NCBI GenBank assembly: GCA_950097015.1
Contig: CATNEN010000002.1
Location: forward strand, 9,114,001-9,178,000
Length of the DNA: 64,000 nt
Direction: 5' to 3'
DNA from: Macrostomum hystrix
Taxonomy: Eukaryota; Animalia; Platyhelminthes
In this document: one piece after another, positions 5,027 through 64,000 of the stretch
Position numbering within the stretch: the stretch's first letter is position 1
Layout of the letters: the number at the start of each line of letters is the position of its first letter
Notes under the pieces: generated by a model
The model's input: the letters and a program-made list of their open reading frames with translations, nothing else
Databases searched by the model: none
Told to the model about the DNA's origin: nothing
Made by a program: the position numbers and the translations under genes

Positions 5027-6900
5027 ATGGACTATCACAGCCAGATTGACATAGAAGCGCACTCTAAGGATTTGAAGCGAATTCGAGAGAATGTGCAAAA
5101 GAAAACCTTCGAGCGGTGGACTAACCGCTTCCTGACTGAGCCCGACTATCGGGTTGGCAACCTGCTGACTGACCTGCGCGATGGCCGGCGACTTATCCGC
5201 CTGGTGGAGATCCTGCAGAAGGTCAGTGACTATAGTCCTGCTTTGTGCTAGTCCTGCTTGGTTTGTGATTGGTCTTTCAAATCATGTCTGGTTTGTGATT
5301 GGTCCTTCAAATCATGTCTGGTTTGTGACTGGTCCTTCAAATCATGTCTGGTTTGTGATTGGTCCTTCAAATCATGTCTGGTTTGTGACTGTTCCTTCAA
5401 ATCATGTCTGGTTTGTGATTGGTCCTTCAAATCATGTCTGGTTTGTGACTGTTCCTTCAAATCATGTCTGGTTTGTGATTGGTCCTTCAAATCATGTCTG
5501 GTTTGTGACTGTTCCTTCAAATCATGTCTGGTTTGTGATTGGTCCTTCAAATCATGTCTGGTTTGTGATTGGTCCTTCAAATCATGCCTGGTTTGTGATT
5601 GGTCCTTCAAATCATGTCTGGTTTGTGATTGGTCCTTCAAATCATGTCTGGTTTGTGATTGGTAACTTCAAATCATGTCTGGTTTGTGATTGGTCCTTCA
5701 AATCATGTCTGGTTTGTGATTGGTCCTTCAAATCATGTCTGGTTTGTGATTGGTAACTTCAAATCATGTCTGGTTTGTGATTAGTTTTTCAAATCATGTC
5801 TGGTTTCGTGATTGGTCCTTCAAATCATGTCTGGTTTGTGATTGGTCCTTCAAATCATGCCTGGTTTGTGATTGGTCCTTCAAATCATGTCTGGTTTGTG
5901 ATTGGTCCTTCAAATCATGTCTGGTTTGTGATTGGTAACTTCAAATCATGTCTGGTTTGTGATTGGTCCTTCAAATCATGTCTGGTTTGTGATTGGTCCT
6001 TCAAATCATGTCTGGTTTGTGATTGGTCCTTCAAATCATGTCTGGTTTGTGATTGGTCCTTCAAATCATGTCTGGTTTGCCAGTTTGGCCCTTTAGTAAT
6101 CAGGTAAAATGCAGTTATTGCTAAATTTGTGTTTGCAACTCGATCGCACAGCACTTAGCCCAAAATAAGTTAGGAAAGTATATTGGCAGAAATAAGGCAG
6201 CCATTAACCATCCTCTGTACCTGGCAGGTCAGCATCGGACGGCCCAACCAGGGCTTCATGCGGGTTCAGCGGGTGGACAATGTCTCCCGCGCTCTGGACG
6301 TGTTGCGCAACACCCGCAAGCGAATCCGAGACACCCGCACTGGCCAGGTGCGGGAGGGCCCGCCAATCATTGTCGGCATCGGCAATGAGAACATTGTGGA
6401 CGGCGATGTCACTCTCACACTCGGCCTGATCTGGCAGATGATTCGGCACTACCACATCGCCATGATTGCCGAGGAGCTGGCCTCCAACAATGAGGAGATC
6501 TCAAAAGAGGCCAAGTCCATCAATGATGCCCTGCTGCTCTGGTGCCAGCAGAAAACCAAAGGCTACCCCAACTGTCACATCCAGGTGAGACCCGATTCAT
6601 TAGTGCCTGAATGTTCCCCATCCACTTGACTCCAAGACTCACTTTGCTATCCTGCAGGATTTCCACAAATCCTGGAATGACGGCATGGCCTTCAACGCCC
6701 TGCTGCACGCTCACCGGCCCGAAGCCTTCGACTACAACCGCCTGCGGCCCGCTGACAAGCTGGCCAACCTCAACCACGCCTTCGATGTAGCGAACGATCA
6801 GTTCGGCGTGGCCAAGCTTCTCGACGCCGAAGACGTTGCCGTCGATATTCCGGACGAGAAGTCCATCATCATCTACGTGACGGACCTGTACTGCGCGCTT
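5027..6900 (+). other. Tandem calponin-homology actin-binding domain of the spectrin (exons 1-3)
   Basis: ENVQKKTFERWTNRFL, DLRDGRRLIRLVEIL, LTLGLIWQMI, DALLLWCQQKTKGY, KLLDAEDVAVDIPDEKSIIIYV match beta-spectrin CH1/CH2 consensus. Confidence 0.92.
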
Positions 6901-9900
6901 AACAAGGCCAAGACTGAGGAGACGGGCTCCAAGAGGGTCACCAACTTCCTCAATGATCTCAACAAGACTGCCAGAAATGTGCAGCGGTACGAGGCCAACG
7001 TGGACGACCTGTTCGCCTGGATCAAGCGCACCATCACCTGGCTGAGCAGCCGCGACTTCCCGAACAACATCGCCGGACTGCAGGAGGAGAAGCGAAAATT
7101 CAACACCTATGTGCAGGTGGAGAAGTTTGAGAAGTGAGTAGCGAGAAAAAAATTACTTTCTATGGTTTTATTAGTATAGGCTAACTGTGTACTGGAGTCA
7201 TTTTGGTATCATATCTGCACCTCATGACTTGTTCATACGCTTCAAGTACACACTTTACTTAAATCCTTTGATTTCCAGCAAATCCGCCTATTCACTCATG
7301 AGGTTTCCAGCCAATCTACTCAGTCATACATGAGGTTTCCAGCAAATCTACTCATTCATTAATGAGGTTTCCAGCAAATCTACTCCTTCATTCATGAGGT
7401 TTCCAGCTAATCTACTCAGTCATACATGAGGTTTCCAGCAAATCTACTCCTTCATTCATGAGGTTTCCAGCAAATCTACTCCTTCATTCATGAGGTTTCC
7501 AGCAAATCAACTCATTCATTCATGAGGTTTCCAGCAAATCTGCCACGATCATGGCATGAAGATTTTTCCAAAGAAGAATACGAATTAGCTAGCACATTTT
7601 TGGATTCAAGGCTGATGGAATATATTTAATTAATCTGTTCCCGCACTGTCTAGCCTCGGTCCCTGGTTTGTGATGCAGACTCGCTATCTCATGATAAAAA
7701 AACTGCTCTACTATAGAAGGTATTTGTTCAGTAGTAATTATGTGTTCAATTCAATCATCGACTCAATTTAGCTTAGGTATTGAGTTTATCAATCACTGAG
7801 TGAAAACATTTTATATCACAAGTATTTTTCACAGTTTTTTATGTCAAATTATAGAAATGTAACTGTACTTGCAGGAATTTGACCCCATCTGGCTAACTGA
7901 GCATACAATGTGAGCTGTCTCACCTACGCCTCTCATGCTAATCAAACCGCTTATTATTATTTACCGTTGTGCCGCATTCGCAAAGCTTTAGGCCTATCCT
8001 CTGTAGATTTGCTTGATGGATGGCTCAGCGTTTCATTGCCTTTGATCTCAGATGTTCTGACACGAATGGGTGTTAACTGGCATGCTGTTCTGTAGCACCT
8101 TCCCCCTAATTCCCCTTAGTAAAGTACATTTGAGCTGCACACGGGAGAGAAAAACACCTTTTGTGACATTGCTGCTAAATGCAGAAGAGAGTTTCTAGCC
8201 TAGTTGTCAGAGAGTCGGACTCCCAATTTGAAGGTCGGGAGTTCGATTCTTGACTCAATTAAGACAAATAGTGTCTTTTTTAGCTAGACACTCAAATATG
8301 CATGGCTTGAGTTCACCCAGCTGTTAACTGAATTGAGAGTGTCCACCCCACTAGTCCATGGACAGCCGTACAGCCTTCAGATGCGCCGCGCAATATCAGC
8401 GGCAGTGCTGTCGGCTGAATGCAGTCATTAAAAGTTTTGCTTTATTGATATTTTTTCTGCATTTTCTGAACCAGCATTAACTTTGCTTGCAGTCGTGGAC
8501 TCATAATAGGTCAATTATTTTTGTTAAACTTAACCAACCCAAACTGCAAATGCAAATTAGGTTAATTACTGGCAAACAATAATGATCTCAAATGCCATAA
8601 TTTCCTATTTGAAATTGTGGCGTGCGCGCAATTCTCTTGAGCAAGGCCTCAATCTGTGTTGGGCGGAGAAATATTCTCACAAATGACCAGCTCACAAAGT
8701 ATTTTTTTCAAGATTATTCTCGTTGTTAAATAGATGTCTGTTGTTGTTTCGCTTATACCATTTTGCATGAGTATATGTATTTTGTTGGTAGCGACTTTCC
8801 TATTCGTGCTTGCAATTATGCCTGAAAATTTTTAATCCGATCTGACACCCTCTCATCCAACCTGACACCCTCTCATCCAACCTGACACTCTCATCCAACC
8901 TGACACCCTCTCATCCAACCTGACACTCTCATCCAACCTGACACCCTCTCATCCAACCTGACACTCTCATCCAACCTGACACCCTCTCATCCAACCTGAC
9001 ACCCTCTCATCCAACCTGACACCCTCTCATACAACCTGACACTCTCATCCAACCTGACACCCTCTCATCCAACCTGACACTCTCATCCAACCTGACACCC
9101 TCTCATCCAACCTGACACTCTCATCCAACCTGACACCCTCTCATCCAACCTGACAACCTCTCATCCAACCTGACAGCCTCTCATCCAACCTGACAGCCTC
9201 ATCCAACCTGACACCCTCTCATCCAACCTGACACCCTCACATCCAACCTGACACCCTCTCATCCAACCTGACACTCATCCAACCTGACACCCTCTCATCC
9301 AACCTGACAGCCTCTCATCCAACCTGACAGCCTCATCCAACCTGACACCCTCTCATCCAACCTGACACCCTCACATCCAACCTGACACCCTCTCATCCAA
9401 CCTGACACCCTCTCATCCAACCTGACACTCTCATCCAACCTGACAGCCTCACATCCAACCTGACACCCTCTAATCCGATCTGACACCCTATTGTCCAGGT
9501 TCGGTGAGCTGACAAACCTGGAGGTGCTGCTGTATGACATTCAAAATCTGCAGCGCAAGGAAGGCCATCGCGTCTATGCGCCGAAAGATGGCAAAACTCT
9601 GGAGGATCTGGGCAAAGCTTGGGCTCGACTGGAGGAGGCTGAGCAGGTGTGTTACTCTGATTTTTATACAGTTTCATTTAAAATTGAAGTAGAGTTTCTC
9701 ACCTGACTACTTGTGCCAGTTTGATAAGTATTATAGTAAAGATGTTTGCCAACTAAACAGGCGCGCGAAAAAGCACTAGTTAGCGAGCTGCTCAAGCAGC
9801 TAGAGCTGGAGAAGCGAGCCCGACACTTCACCCTGGTGATGCTGCCGGCCCGGCTGAAGACACTCGGCGAACTGAGCGCCGCCCTAGCCGACATGCGCTT

Positions 9901-12900
9901 CAATGAGGACAGCATGAAGGACATCGAGGATGTCTGGGAGCGCCTTGTTGGCATCCAGAGCGCCATCCTCAACCAGAAGGAGATCCGCTTCGAGCCATTC
10001 TACCAGGCCGCTAGGCGGCTCATCGAAGAGAATTACAACGACAAGGCACGCATCGCCGAGGCTCGCGACGATGTTCATGCCAAGTGGGACCAGCTGATGG
10101 AGGCCTTCAAAGCCAAGGATGCCGTGATTCGTCCCTACGCTGACATTGTCGCCATCACCAAGGAGGTTGACGCGCTGCGCACCCAGCTGCTGGTGATGCG
10201 CGAGTCGCTGCCAGCTGGCCAGGACGCAGGAGCTCAGCTGTACGACGCAGAGGATTTGCTGGCTAGGCACAAAATCTCCGAGCAGGTGAGCGGGATGAAG
10301 CGAAAAACACTCTATTGCGGTTGCTCTCCCCTAAGCAAAAAGCTCCTAGTCTCCTTCCTAGCGAGCGTGGGCGGAGTCATAAGGTGTTTGGGCGGAGATC
10401 ATAAAGATTGTAAGCAAAGTCATAGAGAGTGATCGGATATCATTGTGGGCGGAGATAAATAGGAGCTTGGGGCGGAGATCATTCAAAGCGTGGGAGGTGG
10501 TCATTCAAAGCGGGGATTATAAATATCGTGGACGGAGTCAGGGAGCGTTGGTTGAGAAACGTCATACCAATTCTGCTAATTATAGCCGTGATAAAAGTAA
10601 ATTATCAGTGATCATTTTGCTTTGTTCCCAGGAGCTCCTGGCCGTGCATGACCAAATCGACCGGTTAAACAGCCGCGCCCAGAAGCTGTCCACCGGCCGC
10701 TCCAAGGGCACCCCGGCAATGACTCTCAGCCGCAACCTGTTCGCCCTGGAGGAGGAATATCAGACCCTCATGAAGCTGTTCGCCGACCGGCGCGCCGACC
10801 TTGAGCTGAGCCGGGACTATTATCAGTTCCTGCAGAGCTGCGAAGATGAGGAGGCCTGGCTGGCCGACAAGCGCTCCGTCCTGCAGGCTGACGTCACCTG
10901 CAAGGATCTGCGATCGGCTCGCAAGATGATCAACCGGTTGAAGGTTGAAGAGGCCGAGCTGTCGCATCGTCGGACGGTGAGACACGGAGAATGTGCGGAA
11001 GTTCGTAGGCAGAAAGTGGGCCAAGGTCACAGTGAGCGTGGGCGGAGGTTTTAGAGTGAGCGTGGGCGGAGGTTTTAGAGTGAACGTGGGCGGAGGTTTT
11101 AGAGTGAACGTGGGCGGAGATTTTAGAGTGAGCGTGGGCGGAGGTTTTAGAGTGAACGTGGGCGGAGGTTTTAGAGTGAGCGTGGGCGGAGGTTTTAGAG
11201 TGAGCGTGGGCGGAGGTTTTAGAGTGAACGTGGGCGGAGGTTTTAGAGTGAACGTGGGCGGAGGTTTTAGAGTGAACGTGGGCGGAGGTCATCGAGGGAG
11301 TCTTGGCGGAGGTTTAGAGGGAGTGTGGGCGGAGGTTTAGAGGGAGTGTGGGCGGAGGCCATAGAGTGAGCGTGTGTGGAGGCCATAGAGTGAGCGTGTG
11401 TGGAGGCCATAGAGTGAGCGTGTGTGGAGGCCATAGAGTGAGCGTGTGTGGAGGCCATAGAGTGAGCGTGTGTGGAGGCCATAGAGTGAGCGTGTGTGGA
11501 GGCCATAGAGTGAGCATGGGCGAAAGTCATAGTGTGAGCGTTGGCGGAGGTAAAATATTTAAGTCTTTGTTGTGGTCATAAACTTTTATACTTTTTTTCG
11601 AAATGTGAATCTCAGCTGTCTGTTTGCGAATCTCCAGGTGAAATTCGCTCACCTGTGCGCAGCCGGTGACGAGATGCAGCGCAGGCTGGCAGCCAGTCCA
11701 GACAAGCAGAAGGCCATCAGCGCCCGCCTAGCCGCCCTGCGCAAAGACTGGGAGAAGCTGCAGCAACTGCTGAAGGCGCACCAGGTCAAGGTCACCGACA
11801 TCTTCGAGGCGCAGCAATTCTACGCGGCGGCAAACGAGGCCGAGGACTACATGAACGGCCTCATGCCTGTGGTGCGCAGTCGCGACCTTGGCCAGGACGT
11901 CGGCTCTGCCAGGGCCCTCCTAAAGCGCCTCGGCTACCTGCGCCAGGAGCTGGATAATTTTGGCCGCGGTGACAATGGCGAGCTCATTAACCTGCACCGC
12001 ATGGCCACCCTGCTGACTGAGGCCGCGGACAAGCACAAAATCGACGCCGCCAAGGTTGGCGAGGCCGCTGCTCAGCGCACCGATGCCGCCGATGCCGAAG
12101 AAGAGGAAGAAGACCCGCTGGTGTCCGTGGAGGAGCCCTACGAAGATACCGTGACCGAGACTCGGGTGGAGGACGCCGAGGAGACCCGCCGCGTGCAGCG
12201 AGTCATGGTCAACCACGCCTACCAGGTATATGAGGGCCTTAAAGTTGCACTTGTCACCCTGAACTCACCCACCTGAACTCGTCAACCTGAACTCACCGAC
12301 CTGAACTCTCCCGCCTGAACTCACCGACCTGAACTTTTCAATCTGAACTCTCCCGCCTGAACTCTCCCGCCTGAACTTGTCAACCTGAATTCTCCCACCT
12401 GAACTTGTCAACCTGAACTCACCGACCTGAACTTGTCAATCTGAACTCTCCCGCCTGAACTTGTCAACCTGAACTCACCGACCTAAGCTTGCCAACCTGA
12501 ACTCATTCACCTGAACTATTCAATCTGTAATCACCTGCTTGAAGCAGCACTTCCTTCCGCATTAACCAACTGTCCGCAAACCCTTCCAGGCCAGGGACCC
12601 GAAGCAGCGAGATCTGAGCGCCGAGAAAGGCGACATTTTTGAGCTGCTACAGAAGACAAACAATGACTGGTACTCAGTACGAGATCTAGACACCAACAAG
12701 CGTGGCTTCCTGCCTGCCATCTACCTGACCGAAATCTCGCCAGCCACCGTCACTGTGCGGGTGCCAAAGACTGTTGAAGTGCAGCGCAAGGTGGCCAAGA
12801 CCCGCATTGTGTACAAGCGCGCCTCCGAGATCAGCGGCGGTGCCAAAGCCGCGGCCGGCAAAGGCGCCAACAGCGCCGCCGGTAGGCGAAAGCGGGCCGC

Positions 12901-15900
12901 CGGCCTGACCCGAAGGCCGTCTCTGCGGACTGCGGAGACCTTGCATGCTGACAAGGAGAACATCGCCAAGAGGATGGACGAGGTCGACAATCAATTCGAG
13001 CAGCTGGTGCTGATGGCCAACAACCGGGCTGGCGATTTGCAGGTGAGGCAGCGGAAATTTCAGTCAGCTGATTTAGATTTCAGTCAGCTGATGCAGATTT
13101 CAGTCAGCTGATTTAGATTTCAGTCAGCTGATTTAGATTTCAGTCAGCTGATGCAGATTTCAGTCAGCTGATTTAGATTTCAGTCAGCTGATTTAGACTT
13201 CAGTCGGCTGATTTAGATTTCAGTCAGCTGATGCAGATTTCAGTCAGCTGATGCAGATTTCAGTCAGCTGATTTAGATTTCAGTCAGCTGATTTAGATTT
13301 CAGTCAGCTGATGCAGATTTCAGTCAGCTGATTTAGATTTCAGTCAGCTGATTTAGATTTCAGTCAGCTGATGCAGATTTCAGTCAGCTGATGCAGATTT
13401 CAGTCAGCTGATTTAGATTTCAGTCAGCTGATGCAGATTTCAGTCAGCTGATTTAGATTTCAGTCAGCTGATTTAGACTTCAGTCAGCTGATTTAGATTT
13501 CAGTCAGCTGATGCAGATTTCAGTCAGCTGATGCAGATTTCAGTCAGCTGATGCAGATTTCAGTCAGCTGATTTAGATTTCAGTCAGCTGATTTAGATTT
13601 CAGTCTGCTGATTTAGATTTCAGTCAGCTGATTTAGATTTCAGTCAGCTGATTTAGATTTCAGTCTGCTGATTTAGATTTCAGTCAGCTGATTTAGATTT
13701 CAGTCAGCTGATTTAGATTTCAGTTAGAAGATGCTTAATAATCAGCTGTTAACAGTTTCCCGTAAATGTTTTTTTACAATAGAAAGACACCCTCCCGCCC
13801 TCCCACCTCAGGACTCGGCCAGGCAGTACCAGTTCTTTCAGCTGGCCCTGGCTTTCCAGTCCTGGCTGTCGGATAAGGAGGCCGTGTTCGCCGCTGAGGA
13901 GTCGCTAGCCGACAATTCTGCTGCCATCAAGAAGCGCTACGAGAAGCACTTCCAGGAGATGGCAGCCAACAAGGCGCGCCTGGACGAGATCGACCAACTG
14001 GCCAAGGAGCTGCTGACAGAGCCGGCGAAATCTGCGGATATGAAGTCAGCTTTGAAGACCGGACAGGACAGGTGAGAATGCACTTTTTAAGTTTGTTCTT
14101 ATTCCCTTTAAAAAAAATGTACTTTTAAATTATTTAAATGTACTTTTCTATGCAAAAATATTTTTGCTTAACATCATACTTTACATACTACTCATCTCTG
14201 ATAGTATGTTTTCATAATACTGGCTAATATTTATTTATTTCCCTAGTGTACTTTTAAGTTGACGTGTACTTGTACGAAAAATGTACTATAATTAATCTCG
14301 TCCAATCTAAAACTGCAGTGTCGTTGACCGAGATCGAGTTAAGAATGTTCACCAAGATATTATGACAAGGTTAGTGATTACATCTGATTTTAATTATTGC
14401 CCTGTCAAAATGTGGGCCCTCAAAAACATGCACAATAGCAATAAATCCTAACTATTTGCAGATGGGAACGCTTAAACAAACTCAAGATTGCAAAGGAGAA
14501 GAAGCTGGCAGATTCCTCTAGGTGAGCTTTAAAAAGTCTACTGAAATTCTTAGCCAACCATAAACTACTGAAAGTAGGCTAAAATGCATGCGAATATTCG
14601 CCAATCTGTTTTCTAGCATTGAGCGCTTCGCCAAGCGCGCCCAGGAGGCCAAGGATCAGCTCGAGGAGAAGCGGGACCTCCTGGCCGAGTTCGTTGACCT
14701 AGGCTTCGATCAGGCCGCCAACGCCGGCCTAATCACCCGGCACAAGAACCTGCTGCGTGACTTGGACCTGCTGCGCAAACGAGTCGCCGAGCTGGACTAC
14801 GAGGGCCGCGCCATCAAGGAGGTCCATCCTGGCGAGGCTGCCTTCATTGACCAAAAACTCGGACAGCTGCATAAACTGCTGGATGAGGTGCGGCCCGTCA
14901 TCATCCCGTCCCTCTCCCACCCCTCTTTACCATAGACTACAAATCCCCCACCCCAACTCAACCCTCCCCGCTCAGGTGTCGGCCCTGGCCAATCAGCGTG
15001 ACGCCGACCTGTCCAACAAGCGCGACAAGCTGGCACTCGAAGCCGCCGCCAAAAAGGCCATGGACGAGCTGGAGAACGCCATCGAGGCCGTCCTGAGCAG
15101 CACCGCCTCCCTCCCAGACGGCTCCAACCGCAAGCGGCGGCCAACCCTGGGCGACATCTCCGACGAGGACATCGCCCACCTGCTGGCCCAGACTGAGGAT
15201 CTGGAGAAGGCGGTGGACAAACTGCTGGAGAAAAATCCCAATGATCCTCAGCTTCTAGCTTTGAAGGCCAAGCTGAAGGCGCGGCGCGAGGTAAAAACTG
15301 AGGATTTTCAGATTTCAGCACATATCTGAACGTTCATGACCTTCCTTGATGCCATCATCGCTATCATCGCCCCCTCAGGAGCTGGAGGCCGCCCAGGAAA
15401 AACGAAAGCGCGAACGCGACAACGCCGAGAATCTGCGCAAATACCTGCGCTCCGCCGACCAGCTGCTGACCAAGCTGAACAGCGTCGACACCCGCCTGGG
15501 CAACCTGCAGCCCGCCGACACCCCCGATCAGCTCCGGGCTCAGCTGACAGAGCTCGAGAGCGCAGCGGCCAAGCTCGACCAGTACGCCGAGACGGCTGAG
15601 GATCTCGCCGACCGCGGCAAGACCGTCCGAGCCACCTGCCAGCCTGCCGACGTCGAGAAGGTCGACGCCCGTATGCGTGCCCTTGACGAAGCCGTTGTCA
15701 AAGCCAAGGCGCGCTGCCACGCCAAGCGGGACGAGCTGCAGTCGGCCGCCGAGTTCGCCAGCTTCAAGGACCGAGCTGACGAGCTGGCCGAGTGGCTGGC
15801 CGAGAAGCGCATCACCGCGGAGGACCGGTCCCACCGGGACCTGGCCAACCTGCCGTCCAAGAAGCAGCGCCACCGTGCCTTCGAGGCCGAGTTAGCCGCC

Positions 15901-54579: not shown

Positions 54580-55140
54580 TCGAAAGAAGCGCGGACCCCT
54601 TCAAGCAGCAGGATGTCTGTACTTTGGGTGAGGGACAGGAGAGCGAAGCGCCGCTGATAATCCAAGGAGACGTGTCTCGGCAATGACTCGGACTTTAGTC
54701 TCTCTGAGACTCGAAGATGATAGTCGGACTGGCCCGCTTGTGTCGAGGGGAGGGGCTCTGGGAATCGTGGACTATCTCGGATCTCGTCTCACGTACGAAC
54801 AACTGGCTGAAGGCCAGAGGCTTCAACAGACACGAGGGCGCCTAGAATGAAGCCTATAAAAGCTTTCTTCGAAAGAAGCGCGGACCCCTTCAAGCAGCAG
54901 GATGTCTGTACTTTGGGTGAGGGACAGGAGAGCGAAGCGCCGCTGATAATCCAAGGAGACGTGTCTCGGCAATGACTCGGACTTTAGTCTCTCTGAGACT
55001 CGAAGATGATAGTCGGACTGGCCCGCTTGTGTCGAGGGGAGGGGCTCTGGGAATCGTGGACTATCTCGGATCTCGTCTCACGTACGAACAACTGGCTGAA
55101 GGCCAGAGGCTTCAACAGACACGAGGGCGCCTAGAATGAA
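54580..55140. repeat. Direct duplication of a 272-bp GC-rich segment with a 17-bp spacer
   Basis: 54580-54851 appears identical to 54869-55140 (offset 289); spacer GCCTATAAAAGCTTTCT. Confidence 0.93.
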
Positions 55141-55419
55141 TGCGGCCCGCATAGAAAGAATAAGTTTCTGTATTGCTTTTTATGACTCTATAACAATGGC
55201 TTTTTTTGTTTTAACGCATGTTATCTGCTACCTATATCACTCATATAGGTAAACGGAACCGAACGGAAAACGGAGACAAGATGCAGCAGATGCTTCTTCT
55301 CAAATGCCGCCTCAGCGACCGTCAGCCAGTGTTTTTGTTTGTATAATTTATGGGGCTCCCCTAGGCGCCAATAATGCAAAATAATGCATTTAGCAATGCA
55401 TGAATAATGCATTGTAATG

Positions 55420-55870
55420 TATTAATAATACATTATAATCTATTAATAATACATTATAATCCATTAATAATACATTATAATCTATTAATAATACATTATA
55501 ATCTATTAATAATACATTATAATCTATTGATAATACATTATAATCTATTAATAATACATTATAATCTATTAATAATACATTATAATCTATTAATAATACA
55601 TTATAATCTATTAATAATACATTATAATCTATTAATAATACATTATAATCTATTAATAATACATTATAATCTATTAATAATACATTATAATCTATTAATA
55701 ATACATTATAATCTATTAATAATACATTATAATCTATTAATAATACATTATAATCTATTAATAATACATTATAATCTATTAATAATGCATTATAATATAT
55801 TGTAGTGCATTATAATCTAGCAATAATGCATTATAATCTATAAATAATCCATTATAATCAATGCATTATA
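55420..55870. repeat. AT-rich minisatellite, 21-bp unit, about 19 clean copies plus degenerate flanks
   Basis: TAATACATTATAATCTATTAA. Confidence 0.96.
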
Positions 55871-57030
55871 ATTTTTATCGAAAGGCGGAATTGTTTAGGC
55901 CACTTACTTACAAGAAGCTTGACTTCAATTTCAAGGGTCTAGTGTCAAGTGCATGCCTAAATACATATGCAAGCTTCTAACCGTCTTTGCTAATAATTGT
56001 ACTTAGCTTGTCAGTTACGTAAATCCCATGTCAGAGCATTACACTAGATATTAAAATTCAGATATTTATGCCTAGACATGCACTTCTAAATAATATAAAA
56101 CATATGAAAAAGAACCGGATCATTCTACTTCCATCTATACATGTTTAGTTCAGCAGACTATGATGCTGGAGGACACAAAATCAGTGATTAACAGTGATAT
56201 GTTTGTTGGCACTTATTCATGTATAATTGTATATAATATAATATTATTGTGATTATATAAATACATTAATGTGATTATCATTGAAGAGAAAATTAAAAAA
56301 AGTTCAATCAAAATGAATATTACACATAAAAGCAACTAGCGCTTGCATGGGAAAACCTGATTACTTCAGTAATCATTGCTGCCAAGAGTCACATTTGCAT
56401 AAAGTGAAAATGCAGTCACTGATGCTAAATTGCAAGTGTAAGCAGCTTAGACAAAGTTAGTTTACAACGATTGTACATCGCATGGTTTCAATATATAGAA
56501 ATTTGAGGAAATTATGAGAATTTATAGAACATGTAGCACAAAATTTCCTTTACTTAAGTAAACAGGCAATTTAAAACATTTTTTTCTATGATTCAGCTGC
56601 TAAAGCAACAAAGGACCAACGGAAAAATTAACTTAAAATAACTATACACGCAAAAAGTAAATGCAGCCTGATTGCACGAAGCAGTTAAGAATGAACGTAT
56701 ACGCTTGCAGAATATTTCAGGAATATTTCAGCCCTGAAACAAAATGCATAAAAAGGACAACGAAAGTAGCACATGAGCGCATGGAAGGATTTTGAGTATC
56801 AACACATTTTTTTCTCTGAATATACAGAAAAATGCACGTGAAAACAGAGCACCTAAATAAATTGCATGATTAGCAATATATAAAAATAGCCTGATATTAG
56901 AGTACGAGATGATCGCAGAACAGACACATGGACTTCAATTGATAATTGAGATATTTGAGAAATTGAGTATTGTGAGCGAATGCAGAAAAATAGGACCGGA
57001 GAAATAAAGAAACAGTCTTCAATGCACCAC

Positions 57031-59532
57031 CTAGTCATGCTCGCTCTCTTCCAACATAGGTACCAGAGAAAAAAAACTACCTACACCACGCAGATGATTG
57101 AGATCAATCTTTATGCAGCGCGACTGAATCATTGAAGACGGAAACCATTCAATCCCATCATTGCGGGCATTTCTGTTGAACATTTCGTAGCGCAGCGACG
57201 GCTTGGAACGAGCTGCTGCTAGAACTGGCCGAGTAAACAGCGGGAAGAGGACACTTTGAAGCGTTCCCACTGAGTCTAGTATTAATCCTAGAAAACTCTG
57301 GCCACCTGGACAGACTTCCCTGATCAGAGAAAAGCGACCATCCTTCAGGTAGACGAACGAGGAGCATGTCTTGAAGTTGGTCTCGTGCCCATGTGCGAAG
57401 ACTGCTTGTCCATTTACCACTATGCAGTCCCTTGGTAGCGATGTATCAGCGATTGCAGATGTAAATGCCTCGTAAGCGGTGAATTCAGAGTGTTGAAAGG
57501 AATTAACCAATGAACTGTACCAAAAAAAACGCTCGGCAATCTGCTCGGCTTGATAGCGAGTACCAGAAAACATGTGCTTGAAATGCAGCATCGCACCTTC
57601 GAATGGAAACATTGAGTAAGAAGATATTGGTCCAAACTCGCGGCACTGATTCCCCATGTGCTCCAACAGATGGAAGTTCAATCGATGTACCTCCTCTGAA
57701 AAGACTTCAGCTGCACTCTCCATGAAAGCAGTGGTGAGCAACTGAACCTGCTCAAATCCGGCATTGCTGTACATGAAATGGTAGACTGCGATTAGGCAGA
57801 AAATGAGCTCCCGGTGTAAACCATTCTGTTGAGCCAGCAGCAAAGGAATCCACAAGTACAGGGAAAACAACTTAAAATCCTTCGCCTTCCAGAGACTCAA
57901 TCTTGCCAGGGTAGGCGGCCGATGAATTCCATGTGGAAACTTTAGATTTTCAAGCAATGAATCAACAACTTCGCGAACAGAACGACCGATGAAAAACTCC
58001 TCGTGGCGGTTCTTGCCGTCAGTTGACATTGTTAGCAGAAGCTTGACCTGGCCCTCGAAAAATGCATGCATTCCGTCAATTATGAAGTTTGCTGGGAAAC
58101 TGATACGCTTACACAGCGGTGACACTCCAGTTACGCCAAAAATGCTCTTTAGGCCCGACTGTTCAAGGAAGCGCACACATTCGAGATGAAATGCAGTTGT
58201 TCGGAGCGGACACTGGGAATTTGGGGCAAACACCCAGAGCCCAGTTCGCAGACTTTTGCCAGGGTTGAGGCACTTAGGACAGGAGAATTCTCCATTGAAC
58301 TGCTTTATGCAGAACAGTGAGGCGAGAGCTGGGAGATCACTTACAATGAAAGAGAAATGCAGGTGCACTGAAAATCTGCCATATTCAACCAGTGTAGGCA
58401 GCTTGTTGAGAATTGCAGGCAGACATTGGCGAAAGTTGGGCTTCTGTTTAGCGGAAACCAGTGCAAGCAAAATGATGTTTCGAAACAATTTCCTCTTGCC
58501 AGGAGGAAGATTCAGAAGGATTGCTGTCAGAGGCCATATCTGCACGTCAGAATTTTCCCAAAATGAAGCTCCATCTGCATTAAGCAAAAAATACATGTGT
58601 AGGTTAGTACCAGAGCTTCGCTCGAGGTTTTCTGCTACATCGGAGTTAAGGACATCAGTGTACATGCCACTGCTCATCTCGCGCTCGTACTCCAAAAGCA
58701 CCTCCAACTGTGAGTCCAAGATGTTCTCGATCTGGCCTTGCACATTCGTAATCACGACGGTAGTGGCCAAGTCTTCATGTTCACGGCAGCCAGCCTTTTC
58801 ACAAACCAGACACAGACGAGCAGAGGTAAATGAATGACAGAAGAAATTTTTCACTCGCGTTTTCATTTGCTTTGCAGACTTTGGCAAATTTCTATCCGGA
58901 ATGTGGCTTAGGAGGAGGAGTAGTCGATTCATAGCAGCATCGCTACAGTTCTCGTTAAGCTGCCACAGCCGCAAAAGAGAAGCAACGGTGCACTCGTCTT
59001 CAAGTGAATGCTGCAGAATGAGATGCCTCTCTTGAAAAACAGAGAGTGGCAGGAGTGGCTCTGCTGCTCCTTGGGCTGACACCGTTGAATGCAATCGTTG
59101 AGATGTCATTGGCACTGAGGCACCAGCAGACGCATGGTCAGATGACGACGACGATGACGACAGGGCCGATCCTGTCGCCGATGACACAGAGGCACTGGCC
59201 GATCCTGTCGCCGATGACACAGAGGCCCTGGCCGATCCTGTCGCCGATGACACAGAGGCACTGGCCGATCCTGTCGCCGATGACACAGAGGCACTGGCCG
59301 ATCCTGTCGCCGATGACACAGAGGCACTAGCCGATCCTGTCGCCGATGACACAGAGGCACTAGCCGATCCTGTCGCCGATGACACAGAGGCACTAGCCGA
59401 TCCTGTCGCCGATGACACAGAGGCACTAGCCGATCCTGTTGCCGATGACACAGAGGCACTGGCCGATCCTGTCGCCGATGACACAGAGGCACTGGCCGAT
59501 CCTGTCGCCGATGTCTTCTGGATGTGCTGCAT
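57031..59532 (-). CDS. CACTA/EnSpm (CMC superfamily) DDE transposase, 833 aa from ATG 59532, intact
   Basis: LNADG (D), IWPL..LLNLPPGKR..RNIILL, IVSDLPA (D), NGEFSCPKC, IDGMHAFFEG (DxxH), LWKAKDF, HLLEHM..FGPISSYSMFPFEG (E); ATG in GCCACCATG context directly after a polypyrimidine-CAG acceptor. Confidence 0.9.
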   Translation of the reverse strand: MQHIQKTSATGSASASVSSATGSASASVSSATGSASASVSSATGSASASVSSATGSASASVSSATGSASASVSSATGSASASVSSATGSASASVSSATGSARASVSSATGSASASVSSATGSALSSSSSSSDHASAGASVPMTSQRLHSTVSAQGAAEPLLPLSVFQERHLILQHSLEDECTVASLLRLWQLNENCSDAAMNRLLLLLSHIPDRNLPKSAKQMKTRVKNFFCHSFTSARLCLVCEKAGCREHEDLATTVVITNVQGQIENILDSQLEVLLEYEREMSSGMYTDVLNSDVAENLERSSGTNLHMYFLLNADGASFWENSDVQIWPLTAILLNLPPGKRKLFRNIILLALVSAKQKPNFRQCLPAILNKLPTLVEYGRFSVHLHFSFIVSDLPALASLFCIKQFNGEFSCPKCLNPGKSLRTGLWVFAPNSQCPLRTTAFHLECVRFLEQSGLKSIFGVTGVSPLCKRISFPANFIIDGMHAFFEGQVKLLLTMSTDGKNRHEEFFIGRSVREVVDSLLENLKFPHGIHRPPTLARLSLWKAKDFKLFSLYLWIPLLLAQQNGLHRELIFCLIAVYHFMYSNAGFEQVQLLTTAFMESAAEVFSEEVHRLNFHLLEHMGNQCREFGPISSYSMFPFEGAMLHFKHMFSGTRYQAEQIAERFFWYSSLVNSFQHSEFTAYEAFTSAIADTSLPRDCIVVNGQAVFAHGHETNFKTCSSFVYLKDGRFSLIREVCPGGQSFLGLILDSVGTLQSVLFPLFTRPVLAAARSKPSLRYEMFNRNARNDGIEWFPSSMIQSRCIKIDLNHLRGVGSFFSLVPMLEESEHD
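59160..59515 (-). repeat. In-frame 33-bp coding minisatellite (SATGSASASVS, about 11 copies) at the transposase N-terminus
   Basis: GGCACTGGCCGATCCTGTCGCCGATGACACAGA on the + strand; the frame stays open through the array. Confidence 0.95.
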
Positions 59533-60231
59533 GGTGGCTGCTGCAGAGTAAGAAAAGTAGCATTTGTACATACATTTACTATTCATTTAACACCCATCAC
59601 TACTTTCAGTCAACACTTGCTCTCAATATACAATGCAGGCGATTTAGAATACATGTCATTGCCATCTTTTATACAGTGCTATCGCAGTAGCTATATACAA
59701 TGGCCGACACTTATGTGAACTGAAGACTGAAGAAAAATTCTTTTCCTTACTATAAACTCTATATACTTAAGTAAAGGATTTAAATCAGACATTTATGTGC
59801 AAAGGCCCAAAATAGTTTGCATCAGTTATCTTATCCATGCTGACTCTGCAGTTATGATCATGTGCATCCCTTGATATTTCTCATATCTAACCAGAGAAGT
59901 ATAGATGAGCAGCCCTATTAGTAACTGCCATTGTTATGTTGACACTAGAAAAAAACAATTCATTTATTATACCTTAGACAAAACTTAACGCCACTAAATA
60001 TTATCTTAAGCAACACACAGAAGTACATTAAACAAGCAGAAAGTAATAACTCGAAGACAAAATTCCAAAAGTCAATGATTGCCATTTTTTTATTTCCACA
60101 AAAAATATCAACCCACACAATGCTTAGGCTCAACATTAACATATAATTAATACACTGCCTTCCATAAAAATAAAAAAATTAAACAATGCACTTCCCACCG
60201 TTGTAAATCAACCCAATATAATCCAGGGACC

Positions 60232-62893
60232 TTAGGTTTTAGGGCTCTTTGCAGCATGATTCTGCTCCGCATAAGTCTGATTCAGACTCTTCCGTGCCAT
60301 GGTCCACATCGCTTCTCCGGAATCGGCGCTGCTAGGTTGAAAAGCCAGTTGTAGAACCTCTACAATTTGGGAAGCAAAATTATACTAAATTTATCTGTTA
60401 TACTCTTTAGAGAAGAGAAAATAGGAGAGATGCATGGGGTGCATGACACATGGCAAAGAAAAACAGCATTGATAAATGTTGCATCCCTGACCATCAAGGT
60501 GAGCAAGTGACCAAGCATCCCTACTCCAGTCAACCAAGCTGTAAGTTGATATCCACTTTAAGGAAGATAAAGTAAACTTCATGGCCCACTGACTACAGAG
60601 CAGTGGAGTGCATAGTTACTCTACCAAGTGATTGCATTGACAGCACAATTTTGCTATTCACCTGAAAATATATTTCTTGGCATACTTGAATTGGAAATAA
60701 TTGGATTGTATTCCTTACTGCTAGTCTTAGTGGTTTACAATGTCATGTATGTCTTTAAATTTATGTTCCATATTAAGTTGCTAATAAAACTGTAGTTTAA
60801 TATTCAGAAATTTTATTCTGTTCCTCAAACCAACATTACCAAAAAGTACAGAATTAGCATATGGATATTACTGGTCATGCCACACTTCCACCCTTATTCC
60901 AAGGCTTATTACTTTACATACCTGATACAATACATTTATGCTGTCTAACAAGAAATTACTACACAGTCAAGCAAAATGTAATATCTTTCACAATAGATAA
61001 CAGGCATTAGTGCTATATTTCATAAAACAATCAGCAATTAAGCAACCAAAGGTTAACTCACTCTTTAGTTCATCCACTACCTCTTGTGAGGCAGCTATCC
61101 GGGTGGTCTTCTTTCCTGGTTCAACAACATGTGTCATCAAATAGGCCAGACCATACCGCTTGAGAGCAAACTGGCGGATGAATGTAGATGGATTGGTTCT
61201 CTTCAGAGACCCCAGGCCAAACTTGACACCATCAACATCAGTGAACTCCTGGAATGTGTGCAGAAAAATATAATGCTCCGCATGCTTCTATGCCACTTAA
61301 AATGAAGACTACCAAATATAATAATCCATTAATTTGCACATAATAACACACCTATATCCAAAAGAGAATTTCTAACTGGTAGCTATAAGCTAAGGACTAT
61401 GTTGCAAAAGTTTGAAATAACAATGAAATAACATATACAACCCACCTGACCTGCTGGAAAAAATTCTGTAAAGCAAAAAATGCTTCTGCTGCAAGTACTC
61501 TGCATGAAGTATGGGGTGCACCCAAGGGCTATGCATATATAGCTATACAGTCAGTAACCTGACTGTGGAGGAGGCAGTTGCAAGTCAAGCCACATGTAAA
61601 TTGTAATTTATCCTAGCTTAAAACTGGTACCATATCATTGTTTGCTTGACTGGGGCTAGAGAACAGCTGGTTTAAGCTATCAAAGGTTGCCTTGAGAGTC
61701 AGAAGCAAATTTAGCCTACAGTAAGTATAACAGCCAATATTGCTTAAATTTGTAGTGATGGTGGATGCAGCTAACCTACTGGACTAGCTGTAGCTACCTT
61801 GTCCCATATGGAAAAATGTAGAAGCGTTATTTAAATAAGAAAATGAATATATTTGTTGTGAATTTTATGCACATAGATATTTAAGAACTAAATAGCATCA
61901 TACCTCATTGCTAGGTTCAGCACGCCGGAAAGTCGATTCCTTTGCATTCCTCTTGAGCTTCCTGAACTCACTATGCATATAGGCTTCTATCTTCACTGAA
62001 AATGAAAAAAAGTGGAAAAAACCTTGCATAACCACATCATGGCTATAAAGTTACATAGATAAAGGACATATGTACTCCACAATCTACATTAAGTAAAGCT
62101 CGAAATATTGCAAGTCAAACAAGTGAGCCATGTGTGCTAATCTGAGGACAGAAGCCTAGAAAATGTGCCTCTCCCATGCTATAGTTATTGTGAAAACTGC
62201 ACACAGTCAAAGCAATCTGCCAACCTGTCCAAGTCAAGTTTTTACACAGAGTAAAATTATTTTGAAATTATTAAGCCACTAAAATTATTTACCCAGTTTG
62301 GCATAGATTTGGACATTAGAAATCTCTTCCCCATCGAGTGCATCAGTACCAATAGCAGCAGCTTCAGCAGCAGAATGACCAGGTGTGGCAGTCATGAACC
62401 TATTCATCACTGCAAACTCTTGCTCAATCCGAATTCCAGCACGGTCACCAGCTACATGGTTCTCAATACCAGTGAGGGCACCAGAACTTCTAGGACAAGC
62501 AGTAGCATCACCATGACAATTGGTGGCCTCATGGCGTGGGCGCTTTTGCAATGAAGCTCTGGCATCATTGGCATCAGCATGCTCAGAGTCATCAGAGGAA
62601 TCACTGGAAGATATTGGTGAATGCTGGCCTAAAATAGTAAGTATATGAATTGCCTGTCAACTATTGTAATAAGATGATACACAGTGTTCCAAAATGTATT
62701 TATATAGCAGCACTGACATACCCCTGACAAACTCTTGCAGAATGGCATCTGTTAAATTGCCTGCAGTTTTATGCTCAGAAATAAATGCTGCCATCTTCTT
62801 CTCCAGCATGTTGACAGATGCTTGTGTGCCAGCATGAAGCAGGCAACCTTGCCAGATTCCTTCTTGACCAAAATCTAGTGGGTAGAAGCCACC
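60232..62893 (-). CDS. Spliced BEN-domain protein (transposon accessory, TnpA-like), at least 5 exons, 5' end not found
   Basis: Exons 62893-62722, 62628-62293, 61995-61904, 61248-61062, 60359-60232 (stop); phases 1,1,0,1, all GT-AG. Joined C-terminus NPSTFIRQFALKRYGLAYLMTHVVEPGKKTTRIAASQEVVDELKKVLQLAFQPSSADSGEAMWTMARKSLNQTYAE fits the BEN helical pattern, preceded by a basic coiled segment YAKLVKIEAYMHSEFRKLKR. AATAAA on minus at 60094 and 59968. Confidence 0.72.
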
Positions 62894-64000
62894 CTAAACA
62901 GGAATGTAAAGAAAAAAATTAAATAAGAGATGAATGCAATCTACAAGTCAAAGAAAAGAATTCATAGCTTTTCTGAACAAGTCAAACAAATATGATTAGG
63001 GGTTTAATAGACAATAAACATTCTAAAAGAAGAACATAGAAAAAGGAAAGATACATATGTTTATCTTAGTGTTTTGCTGCTACAAATCCTTTGGACCATA
63101 ACCATAACGATAATAGTATCCATAATCAACTTTGCTATAATGAGTTTCCATAACTGTAATTGACATAAAATACAATTTTCTGCAACTTCGCATAGCCAAA
63201 ACCATAACCATATTTTGCTTCCTTTAGCTATATATTATTTCAACAAGGAAAAGATAAACTAAGAGATGAAAAGATAAACTAAGAGATGAAAATCCTACAC
63301 TTCTTAGATTCTATAAGACAATGGATATACTCTTCTAAATTAGTCATATTACACTTAAGAGTACAATTACAACATAGAAGAATATAACCATTTTAATCTA
63401 TTTAAACTTATATTTAACTAACTTAAAGACCTTAACTAACTATATTTAACTATGATTTGAAAATCATGTCATAACCATAACCACAATCAATTTATTTTTC
63501 AATAATGATGTTCCTATAACCATCATTACTCTTTTTACTTTTTAGGATGTTCTTATTATAATCTATAACAGTAGCCATAACTATACTATAGCAAAATACT
63601 AGTTTATCTATAAGAGACACTATCTATCAAAACCTATATGCACTGCAATAGGGTTAGTTGGTATCACTTTAAAAGGCAGTCTTTTTCATTTGAATATATA
63701 AATACTCTTAGTTCTAACTCTTTTTGGTTTATCATATTTATGCTTACTCAAGTATTTATTATCACTTTCTTATTTCTAAAGTAAAAGCTCACTTACAAGA
63801 CCTTACCATAATTAATATAAAATAATTTTAATGTTCTTTTTTTATATAAAGTCTAAATGCAAAGGTTATTTTTGGTTTGTAAAAATAGTTACAAGTTGCA
63901 TATATTCTATAGGGACCCTAGATATTGACCCTATATTTCTATAGGATATAATGGTAAAGACAATTTTTCTAGGGAATTAGCATTTAGGGTATCATATCTT

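Follow-up and report, generated by a model that had tools for sequence, protein, structure and literature searches.

Immediately upstream of an open transposase gene in the flatworm Macrostomum hystrix lies a second gene on the same strand, and the question that this locus raises is whether the neighbor is a working partner of the transposase or just an accidental companion. The window analyzed here is a 64,000-nucleotide (nt) stretch of contig CATNEN010000002.1 (assembly GCA_950097015.1, positions 9,114,001 to 9,178,000), for which an earlier note, made from the sequence alone, had proposed a five-exon minus-strand gene with a BEN-like domain at positions 60232 to 62893, read as the DNA-binding partner in an animal CACTA element. 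Our analysis supports this two-gene reading, with DNA binding and a part in transposition attributed to the protein by analogy. We hold with high confidence that the gene is an expressed, transposon-borne partner gene of the BEN fold; that its product binds the repeat arrays at the transposon ends and acts as a transposition cofactor is a proposal toward which we lean slightly, on the strength of analogy; and the whole statement, a young transposon of the CMC (CACTA/Mirage/Chapaev) superfamily with a spliced BEN-fold partner gene that would have such an end-binding, cofactor role, seems reasonably probable to us.

The accessory gene is spliced and has six coding exons

The gene upstream of the transposase, called here the accessory gene, is spliced and is well represented in transcript contigs. 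Its five exons in the window have canonical GT-AG borders and compatible phases on the minus strand, and all four introns between them, as the earlier note had placed them, are seen as joints at the predicted bases (60359/61062, 61248/61904, 61995/62293, and 62628/62722) in the contigs of four out of four RNA runs, each joint reading CT..AC on the plus strand and GT..AG on the strand of the gene. These RNA data are assembled contigs from four public runs of one study with library type unrecorded; the runs contain 84-93% of the sampled words of the window, and their contigs, mapped to positions 58001-64000, behave there as transcriptome, with a depth of roughly 100-290 over the accessory exons versus 5-13 over the introns, so that exons stand about 10-30 times above introns. 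Such contigs show that the spliced form exists, while their depth and their transcript ends are unreliable and rare isoforms can be dropped from them. The quoted peptides, GGFYPLDFGQEGIWQGCLLHAGTQ, a Ser/Asp-rich stretch, and a basic helix, are present in the translation as they had been described. At the 3' side, contigs of the last exon span 59484-60359, and the transcript continues at least to 59484.

The five-exon model is right in that every one of its exons exists, but it lacked a sixth, first coding exon that lies past the end of the window. Transcript contigs carry a 28-nt loose end at 62894 that links the 62722-62893 exon, which begins at an acceptor, to one further upstream; the 28 nt have a unique match in the element locus (L045:3443-3470), with a GT donor next to it. 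The upstream exon ends at window-equivalent position 64475, about 1.6 kb upstream of the exon that had been counted as the first, and in the five sibling copies of the element it forms a clean 210-nt frame of 70 codons that begins with ATG, reads MSNNATGSISRRSKRRSK...MKEFNSSFPDNRNWKV, and is in phase with the next exon; a tblastn search of the element with the paralogues of the gene did not locate this N-terminal exon. Intact copies would encode 374 amino acids from six coding exons. Over the first intron (62895-64000) contig depth is 10-32, above that of the other introns and similar to that of the transposase body, and this signal may come from pre-mRNA or from another transcript.

Both genes lie within one very young transposon

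In the 220-Mb assembly the transposase open reading frame (ORF) occurs six times at approximately 100% identity, once with a 1-nt insertion, and besides these six there are one degraded transposase copy and many families at 26-45% identity. Exon 4 of the accessory gene adjoins all six, with spacing and orientation unchanged from copy to copy. When 20 kb around each copy were aligned, a common block of 10.8-11.2 kb emerged, its size varying solely with the number of repeats in the arrays at its ends, and bounded by a 34-bp inverted repeat (CCCTAGGCGCCAATAAT...) that starts with CCCTAGG. The flanks differ among the six copies, which are bordered by 2-bp target duplications (ga, aa, ta, tg, aa, and ta), and the exact terminal pattern is found at 15 termini in the genome, compared with 0 for a reversed control. 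In six of six copies the accessory gene lies inside the inverted ends, at the same position and in the same orientation relative to the transposase, so the proposed two-gene transposon is borne out as a single 10.8-kb element, and the check that the earlier note had suggested, whether other genomic copies of the transposase keep the gene, came out positive throughout. The gene is not a single-copy locus that is syntenic independently of the transposase; it stands in six copies inside inverted ends, and the pairing recurs in divergent families, as described below.

The element family is very young, since the six copies differ at just nine substitution columns in about 10.7 kb (approximately 99.9% identity outside the end arrays). 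The element is best explained as an autonomous DNA transposon of the CMC superfamily, very young and of the animal TRC/Mirage-like kind, with two genes in the same orientation. Two further remnants were seen in the genome, a short copy that retains both types of end and a fragment of the transposase tail, beside an element of a sister family (G000:C12:1320643-1324372), and a copy that is 91-96% identical and has many frameshifts (G000:C38:33725248-33728945).

The downstream gene encodes a DDE transposase of the CMC superfamily

The transposase ORF, which lies 645 nt downstream of the accessory gene, matches Pfam DUF1258 at 5e-14 and 52.8 bits (cut-off 33.1), and matches Transposase_21 weakly (14.2 bits against a cut-off of 28.6), as it does DUF4218; one relative, P0010, passes the thresholds of both of the latter families. 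Residues D338, D417, and E663, together with C436/C439 of a CxxC motif and H639/H643, are invariant in 14 sequences, and the nearest database proteins, from Macrostomum lignano and from transcriptome and metagenome records, are 27-47% identical, most of them with DUF1258. The gene encodes a DDE transposase. With DUF1258 above its cut-off in a DDE transposase, and with the 34-bp inverted repeat and the 2-bp duplications in six copies, the element belongs to the CMC superfamily, and it is placed in the animal TRC/Mirage-like branch because of the transposase families and residues, the 2-bp duplication, and the CCC with which its ends start. The EnSpm label given to the transposase before is loose: with ends that start with CCCTAGG and a 2-bp duplication, the element is not plant-type En/Spm in the strict CACTA sense.

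The transposase ORF probably has its true start at the ATG at 59532, since a strong acceptor and a favorable start context lie just inside the ORF: a pyrimidine tract and a strong CAG acceptor (AG at 59542-59541) are followed by an ATG in a GCCACC-ATG Kozak context, 54 nt within the frame. The acceptor at 59541 may serve in cis- or in trans-splicing, and this bears on an alternative account in which the locus is one transcription unit, either with mRNAs for the BEN protein and the transposase that share a promoter and 5' exons through alternative splicing, or with the transposase as a downstream cistron reached by read-through or by spliced-leader trans-splicing. We regard this as unlikely, though it is the most credible of the alternatives considered here. 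It would be consistent with a spliced contig (exons 3-4-5) that extends across the 645-nt spacer as far as 59533, a point beyond the first ATG in the transposase ORF, with the acceptor and start context at 59542-59530, the acceptor being of phase 1 and so compatible with three donors, those of exons 1, 2, and 4, and with the several spliced transcripts that are made from both En/Spm and SmTRC1 (PMC1636069). However, a contig that spans two genes is no proof of a single transcript, a phase match at three of five donors is close to chance, and in the four runs, whose contigs drop rare forms, none of the BEN exons was seen joined to the acceptor of the transposase. The transposase relatives from transcriptomes also lack the N-terminal and BEN domains of the accessory family, and profiles of that family run against the transposase relatives found no fused BEN or N-terminal domain.

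In the sister family, a 24-bp repeat (SESLSSGS) lies at the place in its transposase (L038, approximately 2470-2600) that matches the 33-bp repeat of the present one, and an N-terminus encoded by repeats may be characteristic of these transposases.

The accessory protein ends in a predicted BEN-fold domain

From its N- to its C-terminus, the accessory protein comprises a conserved domain of a beta-barrel plus helices, an acidic linker rich in Ser and Asp, a basic helix, and a domain of the BEN fold. Intronless paralogues in the same genome adjoin other transposase families (for example, L041:472-1758, 429 amino acids, and L037:1402-2601, 400 amino acids), and they share a basic N-terminus, the conserved N-terminal domain, the acidic Ser/Asp linker, the helix, and a C-terminal domain that ends in W..V..SLNQ..RD; a Ser/Asp-rich linker of similar kind is present in all full-length relatives. 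When 1.84 billion representatives were searched with a profile of the C-terminal part, 69 proteins were retrieved, of which 28 have an E value of 1e-10 or better and most show the same architecture in 315-440 amino acids. Named members include M. lignano PAA51793.1, annotated just as hypothetical in the database and given the automatic UniRef name 'BEN domain-containing protein', and Hydra vulgaris XP_065671352.1. Exon 4 matches the family by BLASTP down to 2.6e-14 (7.7e-6 for PAA51793.1 and 2.7e-8 for XP_065671352.1), and the last exon (60232-60359) aligns to the last helix of the family, W..V..SLNQ.

The BEN identity of the C-terminal domain is supported by a profile comparison and by a structural model. 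When a family profile built from 40 sequences, including exons 4 and 5 of the element gene, was run against PDB sequences, the BEN domain of BEND6 (7yul) was found at E 0.0014, and the next match stood at 0.81; profile positions 46-124 align to chain residues 11-95, which covers the full domain at marginal strength. An AlphaFold2 model covering residues 300-429, the C-terminus, of paralogue L041, for which the underlying alignment likewise included exons 4 and 5 of the element gene, has a predicted local distance difference test score (pLDDT) of 83.6 overall and above 90 over the domain, where DSSP assigns four helices, compared with the five of the published definition of BEN as a globular helical fold with a middle loop (PMC10789644). 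In a Foldseek search of the PDB with this model the top 12 matches were all BEN domains, and VIA-align against 48,161 chains ranked BEND6 (Z 9.2), BANP (8.9), Bsg25A (8.3), NACC1 (7.8), and BEND3 (6.4) ahead of the next chain at Z 4.2, with root-mean-square deviations of 2.5-3.3 Å over 75-90 residues for the BEN domains. The model of the N-terminal domain (pLDDT 86) shows a small beta-barrel and two helices; a Tudor-like identity was considered for it, and the best matches were weak (Foldseek E 0.06, VIA Z 4.4) and were not counted as an assignment.

Among the relatives is one 207-amino acid protein, MEL7308494.1, filed under a 'Pseudomonadota bacterium' metagenome-assembled genome, that clusters at 90% identity with the family protein P0021, and it is probably a eukaryotic contamination of that assembly.

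The pairing with transposases recurs in divergent families

Exon 4 is found at 13 places in its own genome, six beside the identical transposase and several beside transposases that are just 30-38% identical. The sister family (C5 and C12) matches the element in exon order, in tandem arrangement, and in having a repeat-encoded transposase N-terminus. In M. lignano (L056, NIVC01003357.1), a transposase gene with DUF4218 lies 1.8 kb downstream of an intronless BEN-like gene. The two stand in a complete-looking element at approximately 5703-13138, whose ends read CCCTAGACGACCG and CGGTCGACTAGGG and both carry AATTGCAA arrays, with TG as the duplication. The order is reversed in a 12.8-kb metagenome contig (L057), where a transposase of 855 amino acids with DUF1258 comes first and the BEN-like gene second. 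The pairing of a BEN-like gene with a transposase is conserved across divergent families.

This conservation bears most directly on the idea that the accessory gene is a captured host gene, carried as cargo and of no use to the element. Host fragments are sometimes taken up by large DNA transposons, those of the CMC superfamily among them, and the N-terminal domain is one to which no function has been assigned; but the same gene family accompanies transposases of only 30-38% identity in this genome, as well as those of M. lignano and of the metagenome contig, and the full architecture is conserved among the element-borne relatives. A passenger gene would not have survived so wide a divergence, and for that reason we consider this explanation very improbable.

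Palindrome arrays mark both ends of the element

The candidate site of the accessory protein is an 8-bp palindrome, AATGCATT, that occurs 14 times in the first 520 bp, five times in the last 560 bp, and not at all in the 9.7-kb interior. Within the 10-kb locus L045 the 14 occurrences compare with 0.56 expected, and no shuffle had more than three. Sites in the 5' array are spaced alternately at 22 and 36-37 bp, and the 3' array carries AATGTATT, a one-off variant of AATGCATT. At the 3' end of the sister family AAATGCATTAT occurs three times and the terminus reads ...CCCTAGGG, and another BEN lineage (L037 here and L056 in M. lignano) goes with arrays of a different palindrome, AATTGCAA. These few data points suggest that the end motifs may be specific to each lineage.

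We propose that the BEN protein would bind the AATGCATT/AATGTATT end arrays in a sequence-specific manner, probably with a dimer on each site because the target is a palindrome, and that the bound protein would mark and pair the two ends for the transposase, and/or would regulate the promoter of the element, which is predicted to lie just inside the 5' array. Its role would then be that which TnpA has for TnpD in maize En/Spm.

The second half of this proposal could also be taken alone, with the BEN protein as a regulator that represses the element promoter or protects it from silencing and takes no part in the transposition reaction. The 5' array is directly upstream of the start of the accessory gene, BEN factors with solved structures, for example Insv, BEND6, and BANP, act in transcriptional regulation or as insulators according to the titles of the structures, and TnpA also acts on the Spm promoter (PMC1636069). 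Yet the same motif is packed into the 3' end, far from any promoter, which fits end recognition better, and the accessory gene and the transposase stay paired whichever of them comes first, and we think a purely regulatory function improbable. End binding with a cofactor role remains our preferred reading of the arrays.

Points that weigh against the assignment

A number of observations weigh against the partner reading and its parts. The five exons, searched individually, and the unspliced paralogues gave no Pfam match, including to BEN (PF10523), for which they stay below the membership threshold, and the BEN model is reached by only one of 33 family members (E 5.8e-5); the BEN-like domain that had been placed across the last two exons is borne out by the profile match to BEND6 and by the paralogue model, and Pfam BEN is silent on the exons themselves. 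It is because just one member reaches the Pfam model that we regard the accessory family, by its sequences, as a divergent BEN lineage. The structural model is of a paralogue about 27% identical to the element gene, whose own domain is split by an intron. The RNA support consists of contigs from one study whose library type is unrecorded, with unreliable depth and ends. The motif is assigned to the protein by analogy, and the enrichment of AATGCATT at the ends is circumstantial evidence; in the metagenome relative L057, simple 8-mer counting found no obvious end array. Among the other searches, phmmer of paralogue L041 against PDB sequences and a word-index protein search with the same paralogue gave no match, the family having come to light in the profile search of representatives, and no plant TnpA or other transposase-associated Pfam family was found in the exons, the paralogues, or the family members scanned.

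The last of these points concerns the window copy, whose accessory gene is apparently broken. Its first coding exon has a run of nine T where the five siblings have ten (window-equivalent approximately 64582; L045 approximately 3549), and the shifted frame ends after 45 codons. The shorter run may reflect a true mutation, given the eight private substitutions that this copy carries as well, or it may be a homopolymer assembly error; with the frame shifted, the protein for this copy would have to come from the siblings. The transposase ORF of this copy, called intact in the earlier note, is open. The C38 copy has its 1-nt insertion in the transposase, at window-equivalent 57530, and in the remaining four copies both frames are open.

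Comparison with En/Spm, SmTRC1, and host BEN factors

The comparator best known for two-protein transposition, and the one for which alone it has been well studied, is maize En/Spm, which is similar to the present element in its two-protein cut-and-paste mode, in a transposase of the same superfamily (homology to Transposase_21/tnp2), in the arrays of short motifs in both subterminal regions, and in a more abundant transcript for the noncatalytic protein. For the last of these, contigs cover the accessory exons more deeply than the transposase; this would match En/Spm and SmTRC1, but contig depth is not a sound measure. The element differs from En/Spm in having CCCTAGG rather than CACTA ends, a target duplication of 2 bp rather than 3 bp, and an accessory protein of the BEN fold that has no detectable similarity to plant TnpA. 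It also has its genes in tandem, whereas the transposase ORFs of En/Spm lie in an intron of tnpA, and whereas both En/Spm proteins arise by alternative splicing, no alternative joint was seen here in the transcript contigs.

A closer comparator is SmTRC1 of Schistosoma mansoni, which has a 2-bp duplication and ends starting with CCC (the TRC end of T. castaneum reads CCCTAGTAGCACC...) (DeMarco et al. 2006, PMC1636069), and whose shorter, more abundant transcript encodes a nontransposase protein that was proposed to be TnpA-like (PMC1636069). The concept of a TnpA-like partner for an animal CACTA element was thus already put forward in 2006, with no domain or relatives to go with it. Both elements have a flatworm host, and the features of the animal TRC type (the SmTRC1 group), namely a 2-bp duplication, CCC ends, a Transposase_21-type transposase, and a second, nontransposase product, are all found here. 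SmTRC-PrA had no recognized domain or relatives and was compared by description only; unlike it, the partner described here is assigned to a family of the BEN fold, represented in both Macrostomum and Hydra, and its element has defined motif arrays.

With Insv, Bsg25A/Elba, BEND6, BANP, NACC1, and BEND3, the accessory protein shares the fold (Z 6.4-9.2) and a helix before the domain, with BEND6 a weak but full-length profile match, and with Insv and BANP a palindromic target, which here is a candidate target only. These host BEN factors are transcription or insulator factors, whereas the protein of the element is transposon-encoded, differs in its N-terminal domain, and is missed by the Pfam BEN model. 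A further parallel is in M. lignano, where the BOX15_Mlig010160 genes (PAA51793.1) have the same architecture, with the gene upstream of the transposase and in the same orientation, CCCTAG...CTAGGG ends, a 2-bp duplication (TG), and palindromic arrays at the ends, but are about 30% identical in the BEN half, intronless, and accompanied by AATTGCAA arrays instead of AATGCATT.

More generally, and as a tentative suggestion that we think less likely than the role proposed for this one element, BEN-fold proteins could be the animal counterpart of TnpA, a widespread family of end-binding proteins in flatworm and cnidarian CMC elements, each coevolving with its own palindrome array (AATGCATT or AATTGCAA). 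If this were true, domestication of transposon partners may lie behind at least some of the BEN factors that hosts use in transcription and insulation, as it does for THAP, BED, and other DNA-binding domains. The element also offers a possible origin for the BEN domains that are scattered through animal genomes and evolve fast. A full-text literature search, limited in extent, found no paper linking BEN domains to CMC transposons. The present element offers a clean case, with a practically intact and expressed set of copies, a recognizable DNA-binding fold, and a precise candidate site at both ends.

Features of the window

Table 1. Positions of the transposon, its two genes, and its repeats in the window
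Feature	Position	Strand	Basis or remark
Transposon, 10,774 bp (window part)	55359..64000; continues to window-equivalent 66132 (G000:C2:9169359-9180132)	-	Six copies aligned end to end
3' terminal inverted repeat, CCCTAGGCGCCAATAATGCAAAATAATGCATTTA read inwards	55359..55392	-	34-bp inverted match to 5' end, 91% identical
3' subterminal array, 21-bp unit x 21.8, carries AATGTATT	55403..55859	.	Tandem Repeats Finder; exact AATGCATT sites flank the array towards the terminus
Transposase ORF, 851 codons	57031..59586	-	Pfam DUF1258; likely true start ATG at 59532
Tandem repeat with a 33-bp unit (10.6 copies), coding for the SATGSASASVS repeats at the N-terminus of the transposase ORF	59164..59513	-	Tandem Repeats Finder
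Last coding exon of accessory gene, C-terminal half of BEN-like domain and stop	60232..60359	-	Joint 60359/61062 in 4 runs
Accessory gene exon, N-terminal half of BEN-like domain	61062..61248	-	Joints on both sides; BLASTP to family
Accessory gene exon, basic helix, equivalent of the helix before BEN in paralogues	61904..61995	-	Joints, translation; helix 2-26 in paralogue model
Accessory gene exon, Ser/Asp-rich acidic linker including basic KRPRH patch	62293..62628	-	Transcript joints, translation
Second coding exon of accessory gene (exon 1 of the earlier note), C-terminal part of conserved N-terminal domain	62722..62893	-	Aligns to N-terminal domain of relatives
First intron, window part (intron total 1,581 nt)	62894..64000	-	Loose end of transcript contig and GT donor
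First coding exon of accessory gene	Window-equivalent 64475-64683, outside window	-	210 nt, open in 5 copies; 209 nt, frameshifted in window copy

Approximately 200 bp outside the 3' end of the element, the window also contains a 289-bp direct duplication (54580-55140) of 1.9 copies that are 100% identical.

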